Below, piece after piece: positions 2,532 through 54,995 of a stretch of DNA of 64,000 bases. Below the pieces are notes generated by a model. The model had not been told where the DNA came from and ran no database searches. It saw only the letters and a list, made by a program, of their open reading frames with translations. The stretch lies in assembly GCA_900088475.1 (NCBI GenBank), contig FLMG01001010.1, positions 238,959-302,958 of the forward strand, given 5' to 3'. Source of the stretch: Hyphochytrium catenoides. Its lineage: Eukaryota > Protista > Hyphochytriomycota. The number at the start of each line of letters is the position of its first letter. The stretch's first letter is position 1. The translations under genes and the position numbers were made by a program.

Positions 2532-3601
2532 CTAGCCCGATCGCTTAATAAACTGCTCTTCCATATACTTCCAAAGTACCGAGAACAGCATACCCTGCAT
2601 ACCGTTGGCAATGATTCTCGTCTTCAGACCACGACCAAAAAGGCCAGCCAGTCCATCGCTATCAATAACCATTCGAGCGGCAGCAGGATAGGAGATTGGT
2701 TCATGACTGGTCTGTTTCGTCGTCTTTATCACTCGAATAGAGTTTGATACGGTATCCGAGACAACAGAAGAGGTGAAACCAATAATCGCGTTTCTGCCAA
2801 GTTTGTGCAGCGTCTTATCTGCCTCCGCTTTTGGAAGCTTCTCTTGCAAAAAATTGTACGTCGCAAACCACGGATAGTGGCCAGCGAAGGTAGCTCCCGA
2901 CGCTGCCAGAGCACCGTGGTAGAGGACAGGGACGCCGCCCTTTCCAAGTTTGGTTTTGAGCACTGACATGCCCTTAGCACCATCCACTTGCAGACTAGTC
3001 TTCAAAGTATCGATAGGCATGAGAAAGATGCGCCAAAGAGCAGCAGTTCCAGAAGCCGCAAGGGTCTTTACTGCTACTGGGAGGTCCCTTGTTGCCGCGG
3101 TGTTATCAAGCAGCGCGAGCACTCCTGAGTTTGCAGCTGTGTCGCCAAACCTCGAGAGAGGGCCCTGAAGCAACGAGTGGGAAGTCTTAGAAGGACAAGA
3201 GTAGAAGCTGAAAACAAGAGCTCGCTACCTGTAAAAGCGCGGGTCCAACTCCACGATAGAATCGCCGAACTCCTCCGTCCTTATACAAGGCTTTCAGAGC
3301 CTCGGTAGTGGACGTACCATAACGGTACTGATAGTTCATCGTGGTCCTCAACCACATGAGGGACATCACCTGGATACCCATGGCAGCAGCCCCAGGAAGG
3401 CCACCTCCTAGCGCTCTCTTCCCTGCCTTCTTTAGTACCTCGGAAAAAGGAGGGTGCTCGGTAGTCAGAAGTACTGTGGACCCAGAGGGAGATTGGTCAG
3501 GTACGTAGCTCCACTAACAATGTATTGATGTCGAGTTCACCTGGTGCGTTAGCAAGCTCTGCCTGGGGCTTGATGGCAACGGTGGTAGCCGAAGGCGCCA
3601 T
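2532..3601 (-). CDS. Mitochondrial carrier family (SLC25-like) protein, ~312 aa
   Basis: Exons 3601-3541, 3473-3229 and 3164-2532. Three-repeat carrier architecture with [20 protein letters not shown] and [15 protein letters not shown] motifs. Confidence 0.92.
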
Positions 3602-6959: not shown

Positions 6960-9900
6960 ATGTCTGCCGTGCTGGACTACCTGTCATCTCCGCTTAGGAA
7001 CCTTATAACGCAGACACTCCAGTCTATCCTAAGCAAGTACATTGAGAACATCAAGTTGGACAGTCTAGGGGTCTTTGGGGAGCTGGTGCTCAACAACCTT
7101 GAGCTGAAACGTGATGTCCTTCGCAGTTCATTACAGATTCCCTCAGGTCGCTTACTCCAGCTCTCTCTAAGTAGCCACTGTGTCTCTGAAAAGAGTGTTG
7201 CATTTGCTGCCTTTCCAACGTATAATTCTTGTCGTCTGTCATTGTGCTTGTATTTCAGTCTGAATCAATGCACTCGACGGAGTGTTTGTTTTGCCTGACA
7301 CGAGCGTGTGTCATCTGCAGCTTTTGATATTACTAGGGGATTCCTGCGCGAGCTAAAAATTCTGATTCCATGGAGGCAGATACTGACTCAGTCAATAGAA
7401 GTGAGTTCTACCGTTGAGCAGTCTACGAAATTCAATAGACTTAAGATCAAATGGTGACGTTATAGGTCAAACTCTCAACGATTGAGGTCATTCTTACAGC
7501 CAGAGGAACGGAGGGACTTGAGGTAATGCCCCTTGATGGCCAAGAAGCTTTTGATGAATTTGCACTAGCCTTGCTCTAATAATGTTAATCTCCTCATCTC
7601 AGGACTTAGAAGTAGTTGCGGCACAAGACAACACAGTGGAGGCTAAGAGCGATGCTCCAACTAACAAAGAGAAGCGGCCCTCGAAGGGAGAAGTGCCAGG
7701 ATCTGCTCAAGGTGGAAAGGGATGGGGTCAGTCTCTGCTTAATAAGCTTGCAGGTGTGCCGGGAATCTTGTTAATGAGATTAGTGCTCCTCGGTCAAGCT
7801 GACGTGACTGTTTGTTTCAATCAAAAAGCTCATGTCACCATTTCAGTGACAAACCTTGTCTTTAAGTACGAACAGGAGGATATCGTGCTCTCTCTGGCGT
7901 TGGGAAGTCTGAATATATTCACCGCAAATCCGGACGCTAACTGGCAAAGAACAGCGACCGCGGCAGAATCTACTAACTCAAAGCTAGATCCTAGATTTTA
8001 CAATTTTAACTGTCGTCGTACTATCTTCAAGGTGGCGGAGCTGAAGGACCTCTCTATCTTTTTAGACAGAGCTGCGGTGCGAGAGACGAAGGTCAGGAGA
8101 GGTTCCTTTGGTGACTTGAAAAGTTCTCTTAGGCTTAGCTACGCTTACCCTCTCTACTTTCCTTGAACTGCCTGTAGGACGGATCAGTCAGGGTTGCTCA
8201 GATCAATGAGGCGCCTCTACTCAGCCGAACTGCTATAAACTGTCGAGCGATGTTATTGCTCGAAAGAGAGGAGGAGGAAGAGTTTCCAAACTCGTACCAG
8301 AGGTCAAAGACCGATGCACAAGGAAACCCAGAGGACCGGCCCACTTTTAAAGAGAAGTCGCCTATAGGAGAAGTAGAGGAGACGATAGCTCTGGGTCCCG
8401 ATTTGGTTTTGGATCCATTTTATGACGGTTCCCGTAAGAAAGACTGATGTTGCCCTTGCCCAAGTACTCCAATCTACTCCCGGCTCTCTAGACCTAACCC
8501 TCTCTCCCCTTCACATGACTCTGAATCCTAGCTGGTCGTCCTCCTTGCTTACCTAGCTACGCTGTGCCTGGTCTTGGTCCTGATCCGTTCTTCTAAACCT
8601 CCTTAACCTTCAAAATCAGAGAGTAATGCAGGGGGGTCTCTACAAGTGGAGGAGATTCGAGCAGTTGTTGACATTAACGTCGAAAATCTGGCATTCTCCA
8701 TCAGCGATCGGCAGATTGGTAAGAAGTTACCAACAGTAAGGCGCTCTGGGCCTTCATTGAAGCTTCTGAGCCCTTCTGTAGTAATGCTCCACAGATTTGC
8801 TCTGTTAGAAAGGCAAATGGCCTTAGAGATGAAAGAGGAAAGGAGAAGAAGGTCCAAAAGCTCACAGTTTGCTAGTTTTGACGCTCAAAGCGGAAAATTG
8901 AAAGAACCAACAAAACCTTCAGGTACTTTAATCGAACGCTAGTAGCCCTTTACATCTCTTCGCTTCTTCCTGGTATGTTAACTCTGCCACTTATAACTGT
9001 CCCTATTCGAGCCGTCTTCCCGCAAATCCTCTTTGGCGTTTAGGAGCCTATTGGACTGGTCACCAGGTGCTCATCGGTCCTTCTTTAGATGCTCCGAGCG
9101 AGAGAATGACGACAAAAATATCCAGTGGTGATAGAGATGTGGATGTGCTGGGTTCTGAGCCAGATTCATCCGCCACTTCTCAATCCTCTATATCCAACAA
9201 TGACTCTTCTTGGACGGGATGGGCGATGGGCCTCGTGTCTGGTGGCACTGGTACTGAGGATGAACTGGTCAAGGTACAATTAATTGTTCCTCGATGTGGC
9301 TCCCTGCTGCCGAGCGGCTGCTCACAAGTTTATAGGAACTATTCGAAGAGAGTGAAGCAGCGCTTGCAGCAAGGGAGAGGGAAAGAACGTTACTAGAAGA
9401 GGCCAGACAGGCAAGTGACGTCACTTGAAAAACAAGCGATTGGCTGAACTGCGTGCGTGGCCGGACTCGATATCTCACTTCATACATCGACCTAACCCGC
9501 TCTATGTCTTGCTCGTTCCACTCTCAGAATTACCGGTCAGGTTTCGTGGTAATGGCCGAGGTCAAGAAAGTAACAGTCACTCTTAGAAAGCATACAGAAG
9601 GCTTGACAAGCACGGCTGTCGAACCGGAGATCAACAATGGGGGCGAAGAGGAAGAGCTGGTCTTTGAGCTCGTCCCGGTTGCTAGTCTTGGTCTAGTTAG
9701 GGTTCCGGTTATCAAGCATAAGTCCTCGTAAGTGTTAAGCAGGGGAGAGGAGTGTCGTCCTTCTCATACGACAGATCGTTCAGCTCCGGTCATGAAATTT
9801 CTTAGCTGTCGTCCTCAGATGCCTGGAAGCCGCCAAATTATTGGGTTTGAACCGACTGCTTAACTTGTGAAGATGGTTTGTTGAATCTAACACAATTATT

Positions 9901-35227: not shown

Positions 35228-38200
35228 ATGGATAGGTTAAGGAAGAAACCGAGGTAGGCATAGAAGCATAAAATCTGAGGCCGGGGAAGGCTAATGACGG
35301 GTTAGCTCCTAGTGAATCGAGAGAGAGAGAGAGAGAGATCGAAAGAGATAGAGAGAGACGGTCATATAGAGATGGGATAATTCAAGAGAGAAGAGGACTT
35401 GACACTCCAAGGTACGAAGAGTCAAAGTGTATCGGGGACTTAGGCTACATAACTCGTGAAATTTGAGAGACACAACGTTGTAAATGTCCTTGGAAAAACT
35501 ATACCGCTTACCTCCTCTCTCGGCAGCTCATTATTGACGCAGAAGGACAAGGAGGAAAGCATGTATAGGAACAATAAAGCAAAACGTTCACCAGAAACTC
35601 AAGGTCGAGAAAAACAACGTCAAACACAACGAGATTGGAAGAGAGAGACCGAAGGCAGCGCAGAGCAAAGGGCTAAGAAGTCGCCAGACAGAGTGAGCAT
35701 TACAAGCGCTACCGTAGAGAGTGAAGAAGAGGAACTGGCTGCCAAGTATCAAAAAATGTTGCGGATCGGGCTGCCAGCTGATCTCGTTCGACATAAAATG
35801 AAGCAAGAGCAGTGCCCGCAAACCGTCATCGACCGAGTCTTTCCCCTCTCTCTTGCTATAGTGCCCCGTTCTTCATCCACCTCCGTCTCGAACCCTACCG
35901 AAGGAAGTTTAAGCGTACAAGTCCTAGCAAGCGAGCTTGGGAGCCCTCCAAGAAGCCTAGCGGACGCGGACTCATACTCTCATTTGGGAGGTTACTCCCC
36001 CTTTCTCTTCGCAAAGAAGGTGATTAGTTGGCTGATGGGCGTGCAAAGCCAGCAAAAGCCGCGGATTGAAGCGAGAGACACGGAGGCTATCGTCTGTGCT
36101 GCCTCTAAGTTCAAAGGACTGTCTGAAGCAGGAAAAGAAGGATGTCATTGTAAGACGATTGGAGACGAGAAGGCCCTTGCTGTGAAGACAGATGAACCCT
36201 CCCTATCGAAGTATATTCAGATGCAGAAGGTAATCATCATCCTCACCGTGGCCCGATATGCGGGACTGTCTGAACGTCTCTGACCTCGTTGCCTCTCTCC
36301 TTGAGGTCGGCCTTCCCATAGATGCAATCAGGCATAAGATGAGACAGGACGGTAAAGACCCCAAGCTCTTGTTCCCTGAAGAAAAAGGAGATTTGGCGCC
36401 AAGGGTAAGGAGCTTTGTCTGCTAGGTAGTCCCTCAATTGGCCCTTGTTCTGTCTTGGGTGCCCTAAGTTCACTTGATCAAGCTACAGTTCTTGGCCAAA
36501 AGCCCATTATCTTAGTTCTTCAACCTGGTTCATCTGTGATATGTCTTCTTTCTGCTCGTGAGGGTACGGATAGCCAGTCCTCTTTCCGATGTTGTACAAG
36601 GTTCACATTTCCGCATCACACAGATCCTCGTCACTCTGACACCATCAATCTCAGGTTCTTCCCAAGATACAAGTGACACCACAGCGCCATCCACTTCCTG
36701 CTAACAGAGACCTAAAGAAACCTTCCCCCGCTAAAGCATCTTCAGCTCCCACAAGATCGACGTCGACTCTCTCCTCTCCTCGGGTACCTGCTGCGAAGAA
36801 GGAAAGAGGAAGTGCAAGAAAACTTCGCTGGGCGGAGGTTCCGCGCAATGTCATCGAACAAAAGTCAACATGCTTGTGGAACAGCGGGGTTGGAGAAATG
36901 ACTCACACTCTAAACCAAAAAATAACCAAGGCATTGGAGGACCAGGAATTTCTCCGTCTATTCGTCCACCATCCTTCTCCGAAGAGAAAGAAAAGGCTGG
37001 GAGAGGAAGAACCGTCCACTACTCAAAATGGAGATAAGGAAAACAACAGGAGCAAGAAGAGGCGACAGGGTGCTTCTCTCTTGGATCGCAATCGGTCTCA
37101 TAATGTGGCCATAGGGCTTGCCCGCATCAGGCTACGGCCTGAACTTCTCAAAGAGAGTATACTGTCGATGGAACAAGAAGGGGCAGGTAGACTTTCTTCT
37201 CCTTGAGTCCGAAATATCCTCCTAATAGCAGCATCAGCTACTCACATCGCCTCTTCATCTTATTTGCATCTTTTATGTTTACATATGCCGGATTCACTTG
37301 CCGTCGTTTCCCTATCGCAAGTTCCCGCTAGTTCCGTGTATTCTATTTCTTTGCTCTACCTGCTCTCTCAGTCTAGGTGTACTGTCCCCTCCATTCGTAT
37401 GGGTTTGAGTACTAGAGACACTGACGCCTATCTTAGGGTTAACGGCCGAAAAGTTGGTCCTACTTTCCTCGCTACTGCCTACTCCTGCTGAGGAGAAGAT
37501 GCTTCAAGCGTATTCCGGCCCAAAGACAGAGTTAAACGAAGTAATGTTGATAGACGAAGGACCAGTAGGGGCAATCTCTTCAGCACTGACTTTTCTTCCC
37601 AGGCTGAACAGTTCTTCATGACACTGATGCCAGCGGCAGAGGTGCGCCGGCGCTTGAACTGCTTGATCTTCAAATGTCAGTTCAGCCAGCGAGCGGAGAG
37701 CTTACGCGAGCAGATTCAGCTATTTTCCTTGGCGTGCCACCAAATCGTGTCAAGCACAAGCTTCAGGTACCTCTCCTCCCACTTGAAATCACTATACTAT
37801 CCTTCTACAATGTTATTTGGCCTATTCCGCTTGCTCTTCTGGTTTATGCGGCAGGAGAGGTATAAGTTTGCCTTTGTGCTAGGAATACGAGCGCGCCTCC
37901 ATCGTACATCGACCAGTTCTCTGGGTTGAGCACATCTTTCTCGTCTTCGCTTTCCTTGCCACAATCTAACTCTCAGCAATGGAATTTAGGCAGTTGATGA
38001 TCATCATCCTTCACATTGGAAATCGGCTTAACAACCCTGGCACCAACGTAGTCTTGACGAGGTTTGAACTCCATACTACAACGGTCCCGACTACAGCAGG
38101 AGATAATGAATCTGCTACCCGAGGAACAGGAGTAGCCGGTTTTCGCCTTTCTTCTCTTTTGGAGCTGGGTCGCACAAAGTCTGTGGATGGAAAGATCAGT

Positions 38201-44367: not shown

Positions 44368-47300
44368 TTAGACCGCCCGCGCATACAGCACTTCCGAGAG
44401 GTCAAACGGTTTAGTGGGACCCATAAAGATCTCGGTGGACTGCGGGCTTAAGTTAGGAAAGCAAACGATAACAAAGAAGGGGCCGTGTTAGCATGCAGAG
44501 AGAGCAGACATGCGGGATGGGGAACTAGTACCTCTTCAGTAGCTTTTGCAGTCTCTCTACCCTTCGATCGTAGAGGGAGGGCAGTTCTTTTTGTTGATGG
44601 TCCGTGTTACATAGAATCAAGGGGCCGCAACAGTTCATAAGCGATATGTGATTGTCGCAACGCTTCGTAAAAGACTTATTTACCTGACTCTTGGAGAGCT
44701 AGAAGTGGCCAGAACCGCATTATCAGAGTGCGGAATGCGTTGTTTAGGAGTTTCTGGTCCTTTTTCTGGGTTTTAATAGGCGATCAGGGAGATCAATGAG
44801 TCAGCGCTGTCGGGATCCGTGTTCTAATGACCTCTTCTTATCAGAACAGACGACTAGTAGGCCGGGTAAGAAGGACTGAGGGATCTCTCAAGCACAGACA
44901 TCCATAAGACTGATCCTTGTCGAGGAGACCCGCAACAAAAGCTACATCAAGACAGGAGTGATCCTAGAAAGACCTCACCTGTGATCGGTTCATCGCTTTC
45001 AAGGCAGCTTGCCATTCGGCAGCTACAAGATCTGCCATAGCAGAATCCCGCATAAGGATCGGGAAGGCATTTAGGGTGGGATCACAAGTTACTGCAGAGG
45101 GTGGGGCAGCCGTATTAGACTCTGTACAGTCAACCTCACTGGCGACGTAGGTCAAGTCAACAACCGCATCAAGCCACATCATGTTCCAGGAGAGATAGAT
45201 CACGGAATGCGATGGGACGCCAAGTTGTCTGAATCCAATAAAAGTGCAGGTCCTTTCGCAGCCAGAGTTTTAGTATCTTACCAGCTGCTTTAGAAGCGTT
45301 GAGGGCACTCGTTAGATATAGGAAGTACTGGACCACCAATGGCGCAAGGTTGATTGCCATGACTATGTTTGGAGGGAAGAGCTTTGCCACATCTTGCTCC
45401 TACCAAGCAGATAGATAGAGGTGACGGATAAGAGCTCAATAGAGATATGCGATGCGGCATCCCTCATTTACCTCTGTACTTAGCTTACTCATCGGGATGA
45501 CCTTGATTGATAGCTTAGGGACAATCCGCTCGGCTTGACCCATGAGCTTGGACCAGGCACTGACCGATCTGTTGAACTAGGGGAGGCAAGCCTTAGCGAG
45601 AATGAAGACAGTATCTAGTTGATCCTGTCATTGACCAATCTGAATCTCCCCCTCATAGCGGTTGCTTTTTCAGAGAATAGCTTAGCCCCTGTCGGGAGCA
45701 TGTAAGCAACTGAACATGGCCTTCTCCAGATGAAGGCATGACAGAAGCGGATATTGGATGGTTTACCCTTTCCTTTGTGGCTCCTCTCAAGCTCATGGCT
45801 GTCTGCTATTAACCGCCGTTCATTTCTTTGATTCTACAAAGGTAGACATACCTTGTCTAACTCGATCTCGCTGAAAGGGCTGCCGCCGGAAAGCGTCTTC
45901 TCTACCCTTGTTATGTCCTTTTGTCCAACAATATCCTCTAGGTGAACCAGGCACCAGCCGCAGCCAACCTCCACAGCTGAAGGTCCGTCGTCTCCTATCT
46001 CTCCATCACTGCTAAGTGTCGCGTCATTGTCTGAACGTCCATCGTCTGCTGAATCAGGTGTGTCGTGGTCTTCTTCCAAATCGCTCCCGGTTTCATCCCT
46101 CTTTTCCCTTCTGCCACGAGCTCCATGGTTATCTTTACTACTTTTTGTTGAGTCAAGTTTCGAGTTCCTTGTAGCTTTCTTCCTCATTTCCCTTTTGCCA
46201 TTTAAACTCTTCGGAGCTTTCAGGTGTATTGAAAGCTCGAACAGCAGGGCGAGGTCGGAGATTGGTTGATCGGTACGCAGCTGGATAGAGCAACAGTCAG
46301 AGAGGGACAAGACAATCAAATCAAGCGGCATTGGCGAAACTAAGAACTCAACAAAGCAGAACATTTACGTAGTCCTGCTCTTTCTTACCACAAATTTCGC
46401 GAACTCAGTCTTCGCCTGGCCGCGCTCAAAGATCCAGATATCTGGCTGTTTCGGGTTCCAATCGCAGGCAACCGTGTGGACATTGCTGACAAAATTCTCA
46501 CTAGAGCCCACCTCTCCCTTCTTTGGCTTTTTCATCAGGCAAACGCGGACAGTACGGCGAAGAACATCCTTCTCTCTGTCTTTGTCAGGTACTGGAATGC
46601 CAGACGACGTTTTTAGCGAAACAACCATCGTGGGTGTCGAAGCAGGCAGGCCGGTTGACATAGGAAGAGCTGACGGTGTGGGAAGAGAGGTTTGGACGTT
46701 GGAAGGGGCCGTTGCGATAGGTGGGCTTCTGGCTTTCTGCAACTGCGCAGCAATAATTTCTTTCTTCTCAGGAGCATCTGGCAGCGAGTATATCTGTGAC
46801 GAAAGCTGGGCAATTACCTACATTACCATAAAAGGATGTATTTAGTGATGCTCTAAGGATGCCCTTCCCCTCATAATCGCGTCTTATATCTCTCGCTTCG
46901 ATTGGAAGCTATTCTGGCTCTCTTACCTGAGGGGAAAGAGAGAGGAGCGCTCCTTGCAAAGTATTGCGCCTAATTTTAGCTATAGGTCCAAGCACTGCGG
47001 GCCTGAACGAGGATGGAATCCCGGAGAAGAGGGCCAAGAAGCGCTTTGGGTCAGGTGGTGGACCCCTTGCTAGCTTTCTGAAAGCTCGTAAGGTCTTGCT
47101 TTTAGCGTGGCCCATGGGCATTTCTTTCGTCTGGCCAGAAGATTGTTGAGCCACCAAAGTGAACGCAAACCGGAGCGGGACAGGGCAAAGTAAGAGGGTG
47201 CCTGAGCCAGGAGAGCAGAAAAGTGACGAAGTACATTGCAAAACGAGGACTAACAAGGGGTAGACCATGAAAGATATTTCTTACATTGCTGATGGACTTC

Positions 47301-50300
47301 AGAAGTCGCAAGAACTCGGAGAAATCTATCACTTTGTCTTGATCCTCATCAAAGTCCTCAAATATAGCCCGGTATTCGTCATCACGCAGCTACACAGTGC
47401 AGCCAAATAAATGGCATTAAGATGGAATATAATGCTCACACCAAGTATCAGAGGCACGGAGCGAGACATGCACCAATCTAGAGCTTTCGATGTGTGAGGC
47501 TCACATCATAGAAAGGGACACCACGCAACTGGGGGTGAAGAATAGAGGGCACTGCGCTTCTGGATAAAGTTAACCGCCATTGTCCCGTCAAGATAGAGGG
47601 CATCGAGCCAGTTATTATCTTACCTTGACCTTGATCACCTTGTCGACTAAGTATTTGAACTCCGAAAGAGATAGCTTTCCAGACTTGTCGGTGTCTAACT
47701 CTTCAAACATAGCTAAGATCTCGGCCTCAGTGAGGCGCCCAAGAGACATCCTAAAAGAGTTATCAGGAGGATCAGTCAGTGGAACAGTCTGGCTATCGGA
47801 GTGACCAGGTTATGTGAGAAGGTGCCGAAATTTTGAGCAGAGTAACCGTAGAGCTACAAGTCCTCCTTTTCCTCTCACCTTTTCTCACATAGGCGAGGGG
47901 TTAGAACCCGTAAGAACTCTTCTACATCCACACTTTCACTTCCATCGACATCCATAGCTTTCATCAGCCTTTGCATTTCCTTACTGTCAGCCTCCTGACC
48001 AAGAGCTCGCAATATGGCTCCAAGCTCGCCTAGTTCTGAGGAGCACAGAGTTACGACCACGAAGCTATCCCCTACTTCTCTCTCTCGAGTATTCCTTGAC
48101 CCATCCTATCTCTCCATACGTGTCCCTTGTGAGATAATCTCTCAGCCTATAGCATATGCCCCTCTTACTCACCTATCACTCCGCTCCCATCAACGTCAAA
48201 GTAGTGAAAAGCCCGCCTAATGGCCTTCTTCAATGCCCTCTGGTACTCAATGTCAGACTCCGCTCCAGACAGCTCAGGATCAGAAATGTTGTTATTCTTT
48301 CCTCGGTTTCGTTTACTCCTATTCAGGCTCTCCTCTTCGCTATCCGAGAACCATTCTTCGTTTTTCCTTTTGGGCTTAATGAGTTTACTCTTGACGCCAC
48401 GGTCGTCGTTGGACGATAATTTCTTACCGTTCCCTGACACCTCTGCTTCCGATTCTTCCATGGAGTCCTCATCATTACCCCTGTCAAGTGCGTCACCTTC
48501 TCTCACTCCTGTCTTCTTCTTGTTCTTGCTATGCCTCTGCCGAAAGTATTCTGCTTGCCCCTCCTCTTCTAGTCCATTCCTTACAGCCCCCTTTTTCAAT
48601 GGCCGTCGTGACACAATTCCTAACTCTTCTCCGGCGTCTTGCTCTTGTGGTGACCTTCTAACTTTTCCTCCTTGGTCTTCCAGCAAGCGATAGTAGGCAA
48701 TCCGATCAGATCCAGCCCTATACAGACGAGCTATAGCTTTCAGCTCAGCCGAAGAGAGAGAGAATGACAAAGACTCTGCGGCTTGAGAAAATGCACGCTG
48801 GCTAAGGGATCCTTGCGCCCTCTTATCCGCCTTCCGAAACGCTTTCAAAGCCATCTTCCTGTGAAATGAGGAAAAGCGTAGATGCTCCAAAAAGCTCTCT
48901 CTCACTCTAACTCCTCCTTCTGTGGACTTGCAGTTAGCCTTGAGCCATCTTATGAAGTCACTATAGGATACTTCCTGCTCCTTAGTGTCGGGGTCAAATC
49001 GCTGCGCAACATGAGTCACATCTACTTCTTCCAAGGGACCTAATAGAGAATGAAGCACTAAAGAGAAGTTTTCTACGGAAACTCTTCCAGTTCTCTTTTT
49101 GTCATAGGCCTTGAAGCCCTCCCTTAGTTCCGAGAACTGGACTCCAAGATCGCTAAGTCTCTTGGTTAACTTCAACCCAATAACCCCGAGTTCGTCCCCA
49201 TCGGGCTCGCAAAGTGAAAAGTCCTTGAACTGAGCAAAACTTATGTCGCAGCTTGTGCCCACTTTGAAGCAGGACAAGAGGACCAGGAGCTCCTCGTTAG
49301 AGGCTTCGATATCCGCTCTTTGCAACATCTTAGAGAAGTTTCTGCGGCTAATTCTTAACTCGTCGTCGTCCGCCGTTACGCCTCCCGCCAGCACCTGGAA
49401 TGTGGAGAAGAGGGCGTCTTCGGTACTCTTCATGCCCTTTCTTTTGCTCCTTGTCTCCGCGAGAATGTGGTCCCGCAGCTTTTTCGCTTTCAATGTCAGT
49501 TCCATAGTAACGCGTTCCTCCCATTCCTTCCTAGCCTGTCCCGTACCGGACCCGTATACAGCTTCCAGAAACTTTATATAGTTGACTCCACGACTGTTCC
49601 CAAACAGTTCTGTCACCTTGTCCGCGTCTTCAGCAGTCAGCGCTGAGACCTTCCGTCGCAGGATAAGCGTAAACATCCTCCTGCTGAGAATGCCAGTCCT
49701 TGAATTTGCCGTATGTGAGGCGCGATGTAGAGCATCAGCCAAGTCGTCAAGCCTCTCTGGACGCAGAGAGCTAATCTCCAAGGGCATGACCTGAGGCTCG
49801 CCCATCTCATCGCTGTGGCTGCGCTTACGTCCACCTCTCTTGTTATGGCTAGATTCTTCTCGTGTGCTTGCGTCTGATTCGGAAATATCGCTTGTAGACG
49901 TGAACTTGGGTCTTCGTTTATCCTGTTTCTTTGTCTTATGGTGATCAGATGAAGACTCTTCACTGGAACCGCCTGTGTGTCCACCTTTTCTCTTGCTATC
50001 GCACCGAATATGGGCTGCCTTAACTCTTTTATCGCGCTTACCATTGTCGAAAAGCACCTCGTAGTAGCCATCGCCGTGGTCCTTCTTGATGGCTCCTCGG
50101 AGATAGGCTTCCCCACCGTTACACCTTGCCCGAATGACCATGCCCACTCTCCATTCCGCCTCACTGTGCTGTGCAGCTTCTCCCTCCGAATTTGACTGGG
50201 CACTGTCATCCCCGGGAGAGCAGAGCCAGATGTTCTTACGCGAAATGCCCATTTCCCGGCCACCGTCATCTAACGTTATGTCGTAGGTATTATCACCATT

Positions 50301-53300
50301 GTCCCTTCTGATAGAGCCTGTCCGATATTCAGAAGATTTTTTCCCCTTTACCTTTACCCGCATCCCTGTCTTCAGTCTCCTTGGGATGTTCTTACTATCC
50401 TCACGGTCATTTTTGGGCTCCCACGACTTGTTACCCGGTAAGGGCTTAGACGTGTCGCTGTCCGACTCTGCTGCCGGCTGGATGTTTCTTAGAGGTACCT
50501 CGTGATCCTTGTCACCATCCTCAAACGCTACGTCATAAGTCCCATCTCCGTTATCGCGCTTGATGATGCCAGGATAGTGCTTCTTGCTGTCTCTACAACG
50601 AGCGTTCACCTTCGAGCCTTTCTTCAGCTTCTTCTTGATGCAAGCTTCTCTCTCCGAAAGGTCATCACCGCTCTGCACCTTCTTGGACGGACTCTCGGAG
50701 CGCTCGGTGTCAGACCCCTTGTCAATCTTGATATTCTTCTTGGGTACTGCTCTATCTCTATCCCCACTTTCGAAGGCCACGTCATAGGTGCCATCATTGT
50801 GATCTCCTCTGATGGTGCCACGGTAGTATGTGGTACTGTTTCTACACTTGGCAAGTACCTCCACACCGCGGCTCAGTTTGTGATCCGACGGATTATCAGC
50901 ATTCCCATTCCGTAGCTTGATATTCTTTTTGGCTACCGATCTGTCCCTATCTCCATCGTCGAATCCTACATCAAATGTGGCATCACCATTAACTCGCTCG
51001 ATGGTGCCAGGATAGTGTTTGGCGCTATTGCGACACTTTGCCAGGACCTTCATTCCTGCCTTCAGCTTCATCTCATCATCTGTGGACTCTTCCTTCTTCG
51101 TCTTNNNNNNNNNNNNNNNNNNNNNNNNNNNNNNNNNNNNNNNNNNNNNNNNNNNNNNNNNNNNNNNNNNNNNNNNNNNNNNNNNNNNNNNNNNNNNNNN
51201 NNNNNNNNNNNNNNNNNNNNNNNNNNNNNNNNNNNNNNNNNNNNNNNNNNNNNNNNNNNNNNNNNNNNNNNNNNNNNNNNNNNCCCAGGATAGTGTTTGG
51301 TGCTATTGCGACACTTTGCCAGGACCTTCATTCCAGCCTTCAGCTTCACCTCATCACCCGTGGTCTCATCCTTCTTCGTCTTCTTGGTAGGACACTTGCC
51401 ACTATCATCACTTTCAACCCTAATATTCTTCCGAGGGACTGCTTGGTCTCTATCTCCGTCGTCAAAGGCGATATCGTAAGTACCATCTCCATGATCACGC
51501 TTGATGGTGCCAGGATAGTGTTTGGCGCTATTCTTGCATTTTGCCAGGACCTTCATTCCTGCCTTCAGCTTCACCTCATCGTCAGTTGTTTCATGCTTTT
51601 TATCCTTCTTGGTAGGAGATTTGCCACCATCATCACTTTCAACCTTGATGTTCTTCCGAGGAACTGCTTGGTCTCTATCTCCATCTTCGAAGGCGATATC
51701 GTAAGTACCGTCTCCATGGTCACGCTTGATGGTCCCAGGATAGTGTTTGGTGCTATTCTTGCATTTTGCCATGACCTTCATTCCTGCCTTCAGCTTCACC
51801 TCATCATCTGTGGTCTCATCCTTCTTCGTCTTCTTGGTAGGAGACTTGCCACCATCATCACTTTCAACCTTGATGTTCTTCCGAGGAACAGCTTGGTCTC
51901 TGTCTCCATCATCGAAGGCGATATCGTAAGTACCGTCTTCATGCTCACGCTTGATGGTGCCAGGATAGTGTTTGGTGCTATTGCGACACTTTGCCAGGAC
52001 CTCCATTCCTGCCTTCAGCCTCACCTCATCATCTGCGGTCTCATCCTTCTTCGTCTTCTTGATAGGAGACTTGCCACCATCATCACTTTCAACCTTAATA
52101 TTCTTCCGAGGAACAGCTTGGTCTCTGTCTCCGTCGTCAAAGGCGATATCGTAAGTACCATCTCCATGGTCACGCTTGATGGTGCCAGGATAGTGTTTGG
52201 TGCTATTCTTGCATTTTGCCAGGACCTTCATTCCTGCCTTCAGCTTCACCTCATCATCTGTGGTCTCATCCTTCTTCGTCTTCTTGATAGGAGACTTNNN
52301 NNNNNNNNNNNNNNNNNNNNNNNNNNNNNNNNNNNNNNNNNNNNNNNNNNNNNNNNNNNNNNNNNNNNNNNNTTGCCATGACCTTCATTCCTGCCTTCAG
52401 CTTCACCTCGTCGTCTGTGGTCTCTTCCTTCTTCGTCTTCTTGATAGGAGACTTGCCACTATCATCACTTTCAACCTTAATATTCTTCCGAGGGACTGCT
52501 TGGTCTCTATCTCCATCATCAAAGGCAATATCGTAAGTACCGTCTTCATGGTCACGCTTGATGGTGCCAGGATAGTGTTTGGCACTATTCTTGCATTTTG
52601 CCATGACCCTCATTCCTGCCTTCAGCTTCACCTCGTCATCTGTGGTCTCATCCTTCTTCGCCTTCTTGATAGGAGACGTGTCACCATCATCGCTTTCAAC
52701 CTTAATATTCTTCCGAGGGACTGCTTGGTCTCTATCTCCGTCGTCAAAGGCGATATCGTAAGTACCGTCTTCATGGTCACGCTTGATGGTGCCAGGATAG
52801 TGTTTGGCGCTATTGCGACACTTTGCCAGGACCTTCATTCCTGCGTTCAGCTTCACCTCATCATCTGCGGTCTCATCCTTCTTCGTCTTCTTGGTAGGAG
52901 ACTTGCCACTATCATCACTTTCGACCTTGATGTTCTTCCGAGGAACAGCTTGGTCTCTATCTCCATCATCGAAGGCGATATCAAAAGTACCNNNNNNNNN
53001 NNNNNNNNNNNNNNNNNNNNNNNNNNNNNNNNNNNNNNNNNNNNNNNNNNNNNNNNNNNNNNNNNNNNNNNNNNNNNNNNNNNNNNNNNNNNNNNNNNNN
53101 NNNNNNNNNNNNNNNNNNNNNNNNNNNNNNNNNNNNNNNNNNNNNNNNNNNNNNNGGTCTCTGTCTCCGTCGTCAAAGGCGATATCGTAAGTACCGTCTC
53201 CATGGTCACGCTTGATGGTCCCAGGATAGTGTTTGGCGCTATTTTTGCATTTTGCCATAACCTTCATTCCTGCCTTCAGTTTCACCTCATCGTCTGTGGT

Positions 53301-54995
53301 CTCTTCCTTCTTCGTCTTCTTGGTAGGAGACTTGCCACCATCATCACTTTCAACCTTAATATTCTTCCGAGGGACTGCTTGGTCTCTATCTCCGTCGTCA
53401 AAGGCGATATCGAAAGTACCGTCTCCATGGTCACGCTTGATGGTGCCAGGATAGTGTTTGGCGCTATTCTTGCATTTTGCCATAACCTTCATTCCTGCCT
53501 TCAGCTTCACCTCATCGTCTGTGGTCTCATGCTGTTTACCCTTCGTAGAAGGTTTGCCACCATCATCACTTTCAACCTTGATGTTCTTCCGAGGAACAGC
53601 TTGGTCTCTGTCTCCATCATCAAAGGCGATATCGTAAGTACCGTCTCCATGGTCACGCTTGATGGTCCCAGGATAGTGTTTGGTGCTATTGCGACACTTT
53701 GCCAGGACCTCCATTCCTGCCTTCAGCTTCACCTCATCGTCTGTGGTCTCATTCTTCTTCGTCTTCTTGGTAGGAGACTTGCCACCATCATCACTTTCAA
53801 CCTTGATGTTCTTCCGAGGGACTGCTTGGTCTCTGTCTCCATCATCAAAGGCGATATCGTAAGTACCGTCTCCATGGTCACGCTTGATGGTGGCAGGATA
53901 GTGTTTGGAGCTATTGCGACACTTTGCCAGGACCTTCAATCCTGCCTTCATTTTCACCTCGTCATCTGTGGTCTCATCTTTCTTCGTCTCCTGGATAGAA
54001 GACTTGCCACCATCGTCGCTGTCGACCTTAATATGTTTCCGAGGAACAGCTTGGTCTCTGTCTCCATCATCGAAGGCGATATCGTAAGTACCGTCTCCAT
54101 GGTCACGCTTGATGGTGCCAGGATAGTGTTTGGTGCTATTTCGACACTTTGCCAGGACCTTCATTCCTGCGTTCAGTTTCTCCTCATCATCTGTGGTCTC
54201 ATCCTTCTTCGTCTTCTTGGTAGGAGACTTGCCACCATCATCACTTTCAACCTTAATGTTCTTCCGAGGAACAGCTTGGTCCCTGTCTCCATCGTCAAAC
54301 GCAATATCATAGGTACCGTCTCCATGGTCACGCTTGATGGTCCCAGGATAGTGTTTGGAGCTATTTCGACACTTTGCCATAATCTTAAGGCCTGATCGTA
54401 AGACTGGGTCATCTTCTTGTGAGTTAACCATCGGCACATCCTTTGTAGCCGACCTGGTCGGTCCCCGCCCCTCTTCTGCTGCTTGCTTTATGTCCCTTTG
54501 GGCCACAGAATGATCTCTGTCACCGTCATCAAAATGTATGTCGTATGTCCCATCACCATTGTCTTTCTTGATCTTTCCTGGATAAAATTTGGCACTTCCT
54601 CTACATCGAGCTAGAACCTTTTCGCCAAGCGTGAACGATACTTGGGCCTTCGTAGGTTTGTCATCTGACTTGCTCTGGGCATTAGGCTTCTTCGGTGCAG
54701 CTCGCTCAGAGTCACTTCTCCCCTCAGCAGTGGATCGGGAAAGCCTAGGTAGATGTTAATCTTAGGAGTTAGTAGATTGTGCTGCTTACGCTAGCGCAAT
54801 GACATCAGTGACGTTACCTCCTTGCTAGTCCAAGTGGGGGTTTCTTTGAAGGTTTCGTGCTAGATTGTCATTGGAGTCAGTACGTACAAAGAGTACCATC
54901 AAAGTGAGGCAATGGTCGAACCTTTCGTCCAACTCTATAAGCTCCCCGCCCTTCTTGGGCCGAGACCTAGCGTCGTCATCTGCAGGCCTAGGCAT
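44368..54995 (-). CDS. NPHP1: Giant nephrocystin-1 (NPHP1)-domain protein with N-terminal Tudor-like repeat array and EF-hands
   Basis: Candidate ATG 54995; exons 54995-54922 and 54859-54818, giant exon 54744-48173, then small phase-compatible exons to TAA 44370-44368. The C-terminal part matches recalled NPHP1 motifs: SSFRPAVLG, GIPVP...VLRRTVRVCL, FVSNVHTVACDWNPKQPDIWIF, DLALLFELSI, EVGCGWCLVHL, LSGGSPF, DPTLNAFPILM and terminal KPFDLSEV. The start codon is less certain than the rest. Confidence 0.82.
51105..51283. other. Assembly gap within repeat array
   Basis: Run of n; an apparent frame change coincides with it. Confidence 1.
52298..52372. other. Assembly gap within repeat array
   Basis: Run of n; an apparent frame change coincides with it. 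Confidence 1.
52992..53155. other. Assembly gap within repeat array
   Basis: Run of n. Confidence 1.

Follow-up and report, generated by a model that had tools for sequence, protein, structure and literature searches.

Nephrocystin-1 (NPHP1) is one of the core ciliopathy proteins, and lineage-specific adaptor functions are generally assigned to its N-terminal half; in animals it consists of a coiled coil, an acidic stretch, an SH3 domain, the NPHP1-type C2 domain (NPHP1-C2) and a helical domain. NPHP1 is further characterized by its place at the transition zone and by its binding partners NPHP4 and RPGRIP1L. The family has been defined by the succession of SH3, NPHP1-C2 and helical domain, and its N-terminal region varies, with SH3 in some clades and EF-hand domains in others, Phytophthora being among the species covered (Zhang and Aravind, 2012; PMC3495828). 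Since this region differs between clades, neither coiled coil nor SH3 is family-defining outside animals. The same authors suggested that EF-hands on NPHP1 and NPHP4 make the complexes of these proteins Ca2+-responsive (PMC3495828). The stretch analyzed here, a window of 64,000 nucleotides (nt) from Hyphochytrium catenoides (assembly GCA_900088475.1, contig FLMG01001010.1, positions 238,959 to 302,958), belongs to an oomycete-related protist with a 61-Mb genome; its minus strand carries a predicted gene in which an NPHP1-like C-terminal domain follows a calmodulin-like module of four EF-hands, a region of degenerate EF-hands and a long array of Tudor-like barrels. It is very probable that the identity and the architecture proposed for this gene hold jointly.

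The gene model runs as a single minus-strand gene from an ATG at 54995 to a stop codon at 44368-44370 and comprises 14 exons and 13 introns, with splice sites read by hand and checked by script (Table 1). All 13 introns begin with GT and end with AG, they measure 72-275 nt, and six of them share the donor GTAAGA; the least certain exon ends are those of 44979-45091 and 44532-44586. Exon 1 leaves off in phase 2, and its junction with the acceptor at 54745/54744 keeps the frame; the part of exon 2 that lies upstream of the first Tudor unit contains no in-frame ATG. Exon 2 is made of stop-free blocks of 529, 206, 338 and 977 codons that are broken by three runs of N alone, and the three long minus-strand open frames at 52266-54506, 51068-52249 and 48165-51071 are likewise separated only by N runs. 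From the last gap onward (51104 to the stop), the exon chain amounts to 4,935 nt or 1,645 codons with 12 introns, its sole stop codon is the terminal one, and it spans six Tudor units, the EF-hands and the final NPHP1 exon. The predicted protein as assembled has a length of ~2,900 amino acids (aa), in the order Tudor-like array, serine/lysine-rich low-complexity linker, degenerate EF-hand region, calmodulin-like module, and C2 plus helical domain; the guanine-plus-cytosine (G+C) content of the locus is ~48%. An earlier note on this DNA had proposed a reading frame continuous apart from the N-gaps and a protein of more than 2,500 aa, with at least 21 Tudor-like repeats, degenerate EF-hands before a four-EF-hand module, and NPHP1 motifs collinear down to a terminal PFDLSE. 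The length, the repeat number, both EF-hand regions and the collinear NPHP1 domain are borne out by the results given here; continuity holds unbroken for the 1,645 codons after the last gap, and of the three gaps, one preserves the frame at its written length and the other two do not.

Table 1. Predicted features of the NPHP1-like gene, in window coordinates, with the evidence for each.
Feature	Position	Strand	Evidence or detail
Exon 1 with proposed start codon (ATG 54995-54993)	54922..54995	-	donor GTTCGA
Giant exon 2: Tudor array, low-complexity linker, degenerate EF-hand region, calmodulin-like loop 1	48173..54744	-	stop-free frames
Tudor-like array	49995..54638	-	Tandem Repeats Finder, Pfam, unit alignment, own-genome scan, pN/pS
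Assembly gap in array, 164 N	52992..53155		in frame as written; register implies 185 + 225n nt
Assembly gap in array, 75 N	52298..52372		out of frame as written; register implies 143 + 225n nt
Assembly gap in array, 179 N	51105..51283		out of frame as written; register implies 126 + 225n nt
Degenerate EF-hand region, ~four helix-loop-helix pairs	48666..49787	-	Pfam EF-hand_7 on one pair
Calmodulin/centrin-like module, four EF-hands	47285..48236	-	canonical loops, Pfam, alignment to G4YYP5
Calmodulin-like loop 1	48174-48197 plus split codon, end of exon 2	-	DVDGSGVIELGE
Calmodulin-like loop 2	exon 47879-48035	-	DVDGSESVDVEE
Calmodulin-like loop 3	exon 47624-47750	-	DTDKSGKLSLSE; Pfam EF-hand_1, 32.1 bits
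Calmodulin-like loop 4	exon 47285-47389	-	DEDQDKVIDFSE
Conserved pre-C2 linker exon (KLARGPPPDP ... IPSSFRPAVL)	46927..47130	-	family profile E 5e-9, profile positions 1-52
NPHP1-type C2, first half (VVSLK ... VRVCL ... NVHTVACDW ... IWIF)	46389..46817	-	family profile E 4e-25
NPHP1-type C2, second half (LLFELSIHL ... EVGCGWC ... LSGGSPFSEIELD)	45852..46280	-	family profile E 6e-12; 8e-15 with updated profile
C-terminal helical domain, six short exons, ending ...PTKPFDLSEVLYARAV + stop	44368..45576	-	collinear weak profile matches
Helical-domain exons	45472-45576, 45282-45399, 44979-45091, 44684-44765, 44532-44586, 44368-44446	-	consistent phases

The C-terminal domain was linked to NPHP1 by way of its oomycete relatives. 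A phmmer search of 1.84 billion proteins with exon 46389-46817 gave 13 hits (best E 4e-8), including G4YYP5 of Phytophthora sojae, a protein of Aphanomyces, and proteins from metagenomes that are named as EF-hand proteins; the proteins found in this way have four EF-hands followed by a domain homologous to the C-terminus of the window gene. A family profile was built from these oomycete and metagenome relatives, with an updated version used for some of the E-values, and the linker and the two C2 halves match it in order (Table 1), with an acidic insert of ~75 aa within the second half. When this profile was run with filters off against the 64-kb window, seven of the nine best segments were collinear exons of the gene, covering profile positions 2-392 of 448; the weak matches of the helical-domain exons (E 0.46, 1.6, 0.0046 and 0.62) are among these nine best of 2,066 window segments. 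Short motifs of the window gene can be paired with those of the oomycete proteins (TCDPTLNAFP with TCEPALKLLP, MRFWP with LRMWP, and PFDLSEV with PFHVREV). The motifs named in the earlier note also agree with the human NPHP1 sequence, an agreement that is counted as a lead only. In a family-profile search of the 61-Mb genome, the window locus was the only locus matched, and the gene is predicted to be the sole NPHP1 orthologue of this genome.

Direct searches did not return a named NPHP1. No Pfam model matched the C-terminal domain, a word search with exon 46368-46817 gave nothing, the exhaustive exon search had no named NPHP1 among its hits, the profile word search with the family alignment recovered oomycete and unnamed proteins only, and a PDB sequence search with the family profile yielded nothing below E 0.28. 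A feature search with the single exon 46368-46817 gave a lead to cnidarian clusters (0.88) that was dropped as unrelated. The language-model feature search with residues 236-735 of G4YYP5 was topped by chordate clusters, "SH3 domain-containing protein (Fragment)" (0.96) and "nephrocystin-1-like" (0.92). The AlphaFold model of G4YYP5 (P0005; residues 255-735) is of modest confidence, with a mean predicted local distance difference test (pLDDT) score of 58; its template modelling (TM) scores are 0.63 over 377 residues against a "nephrocystin-1-like isoform X3" cluster, 0.58/0.63 against the chordate SH3-fragment cluster and 0.48/0.65 against "nephrocystin-1-like", vs. ~0.25 for unrelated entries. 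The beta-sandwich of this model (residues 94-290) matches C2 domains nearly exclusively, with Z-scores of 5.6-7.9.

The silence of every sequence search about annotated NPHP1, the modest model that carries the structural link, and one language-model hit named "putative Nephrocystin 4" could also be accommodated if the C-terminal domain belonged to another family with a C2 and a helical part that merely resembles nephrocystin-1. Against this, the three nephrocystin-1-type clusters are the only structural matches to span the helical part as well as the sandwich (TM 0.48-0.63 vs. ~0.25 for the rest), the independent feature search placed identical clusters at its top, and the published profile analysis assigns EF-hand-bearing proteins to NPHP1, with Phytophthora among the species (PMC3495828). 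The gene is, moreover, single-copy in a genome with other transition-zone genes; B9-C2 genes were found at four loci together with one RPGRIP1-type C2 (C2-C2_1), so that the transition-zone toolkit is present. Membership in a look-alike family appears very improbable. An NPHP1-type C2 sandwich followed by a helical domain, as the family is defined in PMC3495828, was found in the window gene via the orthologue profile and the orthologue model, and by these the C-terminal ~600 aa are predicted to be the conserved NPHP1 core, a C2-type beta-sandwich and then a helical domain.

Upstream of this core, the window gene shares its plan with oomycete EF-hand NPHP1 proteins. P. sojae G4YYP5 (735 aa, listed as "Calmodulin") is collinear over its full length, with four EF-hands, linker, C2 and helical domain; the linker signature KLxRGxP...PSxFRP is conserved, and identity to the oomycete proteins in the best-conserved exon is ~36-48%. 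A canonical EF-hand loop of 12 residues carries its ligands at 1, 3, 5 and 12 and has a hydrophobic side chain at 8, and all four calmodulin-like loops show this pattern; the module aligns with the four EF-hands of G4YYP5. As in stramenopile EF-hand NPHP1, the four-EF-hand module lies directly before the conserved linker and C2 in a phase-consistent splice chain, and the arrangement of module, linker and C2 is identical in P0005, P0009, P0014, P0015, P0017, P0018 and P0033. In the degenerate region further upstream, Pfam EF-hand_7 matches at 48942-49136 (53.9 bits, 2.3e-14), and the Ca2+ ligands are gone from most loops (for example DKKRTGRVSVEN); a degenerate EF-hand module also precedes the calmodulin-like module in the metagenome relative P0015, and three copies occur in P0031.

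Loop 1 of the calmodulin-like module is encoded in the giant exon and loops 2-4 in the three exons that follow; with the module split in this way, the Tudor/EF-hand part and the downstream part are inseparable at that point. The place where two same-strand neighbors could still have been wrongly joined, a Tudor/EF-hand gene and an NPHP1-like gene starting from an ATG near 47121, is the next junction: exon 46927-47130 has an in-frame ATG (MPMGH...) at its start, the exon junctions are predicted from the DNA alone, and the oomycete NPHP1-like proteins have no Tudor array. Yet the EF-hand frame, if left unspliced, would continue to 47105 and overlap that ATG, and the intron in question is a clean GTAAGA...CAG intron of 154 nt, in phase. 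All oomycete orthologues keep the four EF-hands, the linker and the NPHP1-like domain in one protein, and the disputed junction is therefore conserved; a metagenome locus described below (L017) has Tudor units, EF-hands and NPHP1-like domain in one intronless open reading frame (ORF). A wrongly joined pair is thus extremely improbable, and the Tudor array, the EF-hands and the NPHP1-like domain are predicted to form one gene.

The array has a period of 225 nt with 89-90% matches in each of its three assembled blocks (Tandem Repeats Finder). Each 75-aa unit consists of a barrel of ~52 aa and a charged linker of ~23 aa; there are 17 complete units and four cut by gaps, i.e., at least 21, of which the first and the last five are diverged and the central ones near-identical. 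Pfam Tudor models match the translated minus-strand units far above their cut-offs: 53-BP1_Tudor with 115.6 bits (cut-off 22), Tudor_5 with 96.3 (31), SGF29_Tudor with 94.7 (23.8), and also Tudor_3. Differences between units concentrate on the third codon positions of the Tudor frame, and the ratio of nonsynonymous to synonymous differences per site (pN/pS) between units amounts to 0.22 over the whole unit (barrel core, 0.18; linker, 0.38), vs. more than 1.6 in out-of-register frames. Since pN/pS is low in the Tudor frame only, the array is coding sequence under purifying selection and not satellite DNA that happens to be open in one frame.

All three assembly gaps lie inside the array, so that the uncertainty they bring is limited to the number of units, which is a lower bound. 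On either side of each gap, the repeats are of one subfamily, share the strand and keep a stop-free Tudor frame. None of the gap lengths implied by the repeat register (Table 1) equals its N run and each of them restores the frame, which makes continuity across the gaps plausible; from the flanking repeats, it is likely but unproven. With three gaps within repeats, two of them out of frame as written, and with several other Tudor arrays of this genome broken at contig ends, the blocks beyond the gaps might instead stem from another, mis-scaffolded Tudor gene, leaving six units to the true gene. The units flanking each gap, however, form one subfamily with 82-95% nucleotide identity and the signature AKC...HYPGTIKRDH, compared to 38-41% aa identity with Tudor arrays elsewhere in the genome; a diverged first unit, an intron and a start codon close the 5' block, which is what a true gene start should look like; and a metagenome relative (L016) likewise has at least 17 units. 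Partial mis-scaffolding is improbable, and the full array of at least 21 units is retained here.

Sequence and structure comparisons place the barrels closest to the Tudor domains of 53BP1. A profile built from 17 units found 53BP1 Tudor-1 in PDB (E 4e-5), followed by PHF20L1 and KDM4A, and Foldseek with the barrel model retrieved 53BP1 (E 1e-5, probability 1.00), BAHCC1, the Agenet domain of ADCP1, SGF29 and SETDB1. The array units are SH3-like five-stranded barrels of ~50 aa recognized by curated Tudor models. In an AlphaFold 2 model of two units, two five-stranded barrels (pLDDT 80-86) are joined by linkers below 50, with a predicted TM score of 0.35; in this model, the barrels look like beads on a string and not like a packed tandem Tudor. 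Thus, the window units share the five-stranded SH3-like barrel with the 53BP1/Crb2-type Tudor domains of the Royal family, of which 53BP1 Tudor-1 is the best match in both sequence and structure, but the model has unstructured linkers in place of tandem-pair packing.

A second difference concerns the methyl-lysine cage, which in 53BP1 is built of Trp, Tyr, Phe and Tyr plus Asp. In the hidden Markov model alignment to 53BP1, the Trp position of the AKW motif corresponds to a near-invariant Cys of the window units; Tyr (in HYPG), Phe and Asp (in FDDG) are retained, and the Tyr after DDG is replaced by Asp. Two of the four aromatics are substituted, and the window barrels lack the full aromatic cage for methyl-lysine or methyl-arginine; with Trp changed to Cys and Tyr to Asp, a role as classical methyl-lysine reader is doubtful. 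The position of the cage Trp is occupied by Cys in the NPHP1-linked arrays (window, P0031 and P0033), and by Tyr or Phe in the Phytophthora proteins P0032 and P0034, in P0035 and P0038, and in two further arrays of the own genome (C167 and C227). Drosophila Tudor and the TDRD proteins are multi-Tudor scaffolds; unlike these, the window units are minimal barrels and not extended Tudor domains, and the context of the array would be ciliary, compared to chromatin or germ granules for 53BP1 and the multi-Tudor scaffolds. By analogy with such proteins, many barrels per chain suggest multivalent binding.

The closest relatives of the whole gene came from metagenomes, where the 979-aa open frame, used in a word search, led to proteins P0033 and P0031. 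In P0033 (1,198 aa), five Tudor units precede four EF-hands, which are followed by the NPHP1-like domain (E 8e-81 against the family profile), all encoded in one intronless ORF of 1,198 codons (L017, 6001-9597) on a 33.6-kb contig; its order is that of the window gene, without introns and without the degenerate EF-hand region. P0031 (1,675 aa) has nine Tudor units, three degenerate EF-hand modules and the start of a calmodulin-like module, and its model ends at a point that matches an intron of the window gene. Its 90-kb scaffold (L016) carries extra Tudor exons upstream, for a total of at least 17 units compared to at least 21 in the window, and downstream, on the same strand and collinear, the rest of the EF-hand exons and then five exons of the NPHP1-like part (E 1e-37 to 6e-18); the order is again that of the window gene. 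G+C content is 44% at L016 and 58% at L017. The Tudor units of the window, L016 and L017 form a common subfamily with Cys at the cage-Trp position and DDGDRD, and the window units are 43-50% identical to those linked to NPHP1 in L016 and L017, vs. 38-41% to the other arrays of their own genome. Since they are nearer to the former than to the latter, the fusion would be older than the split of the three lineages, as the unit comparison suggests.

Neither the oomycete orthologues nor the P0015 contig contain a Tudor unit; P0015 shares with the window gene the degenerate EF-hand region upstream. Phytophthora proteins with 13-14 Tudor units were found and were considered as mis-split NPHP1 N-termini, an idea that was rejected because no similarity was seen between the C-terminus of P0032 and the N-terminus of P0015, and because the P0015 contig lacks Tudor units.

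Compared to animal NPHP1, the window gene has a similar C-terminal C2 sandwich and helical domain, is ~four times longer, and has neither coiled coil nor SH3; Pfam finds Tudor and EF-hand families instead. The earlier note had the single SH3 barrel replaced by the Tudor barrels; the results do not bear this out in that form, as it is the calmodulin-like module that, in the predicted protein, occupies the position of the animal SH3 right before the C2 domain, and the degenerate EF-hands and the array of at least 21 Tudor-like barrels are placed further upstream, the array as an additional N-terminal extension. The note had also regarded the architecture as undescribed. This holds in part: EF-hand NPHP1 was published in 2012 (PMC3495828), and a literature search found no paper joining nephrocystin-1 and Tudor domains; a search on PITG_07078, PHYSODRAFT_483418 and G4YYP5 found nothing either. 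Nor is the architecture confined to this genome, since the two environmental contigs L016 and L017 carry the same order. The EF-hand form of NPHP1 is already known; what is new is the layout with a Tudor array on NPHP1, which recurs on two environmental contigs. In one branch of oomycete-related protists, the N-terminal half of NPHP1 appears to have grown into a giant Tudor array with candidate Ca2+ sensors, a layout kept in at least three lineages and under purifying selection; Tudor arrays of the 53BP1 type are here fused to a ciliary, not a chromatin, protein.

An NPHP1 core combined with an EF-hand module and a Tudor arm is, overall, probably the best explanation of the locus. Several points weigh against it. 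The gene model was read from the DNA sequence and its exon chain is a prediction; the connection to NPHP1 passes through the oomycete orthologues and their modest-confidence model, without a direct alignment to animal NPHP1, and the best C2 matches of this model, with Z below 8, are graded as middling by the tool itself. Two of the three gaps disrupt the frame as written and the length given for the array is a minimum, a function of the barrels as readers of methyl marks is doubtful, and the location of the protein, its Ca2+ binding and its ligand are what we infer.

In functional terms, the protein would belong to the NPHP1-4-8 module by virtue of its C2/helical core and be anchored by it at the flagellar base or transition zone, and the EF-hand module would render this attachment or the partners of the protein Ca2+-responsive, for example during Ca2+-triggered shedding or retraction of flagella at zoospore encystment; the chances for and against such Ca2+ regulation appear evenly balanced. 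The Tudor array would form a long, multivalent binding arm for a repeated ligand, which, with two of the four cage aromatics replaced, is probably not read via a classical methyl-lysine cage. A ligand-binding arm rather than a passive spacer is a tentative proposal, less likely than not, and it competes with the rather unlikely alternative of a gene exactly as described whose array has no specific ligand and serves as an expandable spacer or bulky tail in which size matters. An incomplete aromatic cage, the ongoing homogenization of the central units (89% nucleotide identity), copy numbers that vary by lineage (5, at least 17, at least 21), and oomycete orthologues that dispense with the array would all suit a spacer; stronger purifying selection on the barrel core than on the linker (pN/pS 0.18 vs. 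0.38) and surface residues retained across three lineages (Cys, HYPG, DDGDRD) would not.

The binding arm, if present, could be combined with the calmodulin-like module into a more specific and decidedly speculative scheme, in which, in heterokont zoospores, NPHP1 would serve at the base of the flagellum as a multivalent tether switched by Ca2+. The partner of the barrels would be a ligand, repeated or modified, that is carried by doublet microtubules or by periodic transition-zone structures such as the transitional helix or rings, and a Ca2+ signal would release or tighten the tether when flagella are shed or withdrawn at encystment. The earlier note had raised a Ca2+-regulated periodic scaffold at the flagellar base as a possibility, in connection with the transitional helix. 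In the available part of one review, the transitional helix is described by ultrastructure only and NPHP1 is not mentioned (PMC9010356). A tether of this kind, unlikely as it is, would provide a first molecular handle on heterokont-specific structures and a non-chromatin role for 53BP1-type Tudor arrays. More generally, the gene points to a possible Ca2+ control of the transition zone, as already suggested in 2012, to which a candidate arm for multivalent binding is now added; as long as the protein is not localized, the finding is of modest practical use.

Judging from the arrays detected, Tudor barrels are a module used repeatedly, in oomycetes as well as in this genome. The locus G000:C227:134-4363 (L013) has at least 20 Tudor-like units in a 1,639-aa frame with two CxxC...CxxC zinc-finger-like motifs at its start and a weak EF-hand pair upstream; the same array family fills the 1.76-kb contig G000:C4079 (L015) and the end of C3755:39267-40541 (L012), and the three pieces are probably one gene broken by the assembly. 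At G000:C167:140168-142771 (L011), a 1,363-aa frame contains at least 12 near-identical Tudor-like units with the signature KLEEGDKVEAQFKGGSKFYKGKITRCRVDGTYDIEYEDGDKEQ. Five Tudor-like units are found at a contig end in G000:C402:17000-24620 (L014), with sub-cut-off EF-hand matches downstream on the same strand; judged by these matches, this would be a second gene in which a Tudor array precedes EF-hands. Also downstream in C402 are four short AVGF/ACGF/AIGF repeats that appear PUB-like by eye, one of which was scanned without a Pfam match. In the pelagophyte Aureococcus anophagefferens, the 753-aa "alpha-kinase" P0043 has three similar Tudor units fused to an alpha-kinase domain, a further case of these barrels outside chromatin proteins. 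A Tcp10_C (CPAP G-box) match on the Tudor-array protein P0036 was rejected, as it lies inside a Tudor unit and reaches 29 bits vs. a cut-off of 36.

Among the neighboring genes, CCDC53, a subunit of the WASH complex, is found at 35456-36283 on the plus strand of the window, ~8 kb from the NPHP1 gene, and at 5487-6929 of L016, 2-4 kb from the equivalent NPHP1-like gene; this proximity in both places may represent conserved microsynteny. Elsewhere in the window, a weak match to the VPS13 N-terminus (21 bits, far under the cut-off) was noted at 7582-8166 on the plus strand, and a mitochondrial carrier is encoded at 2532-3173 on the minus strand (Mito_carr, E 1.4e-15).

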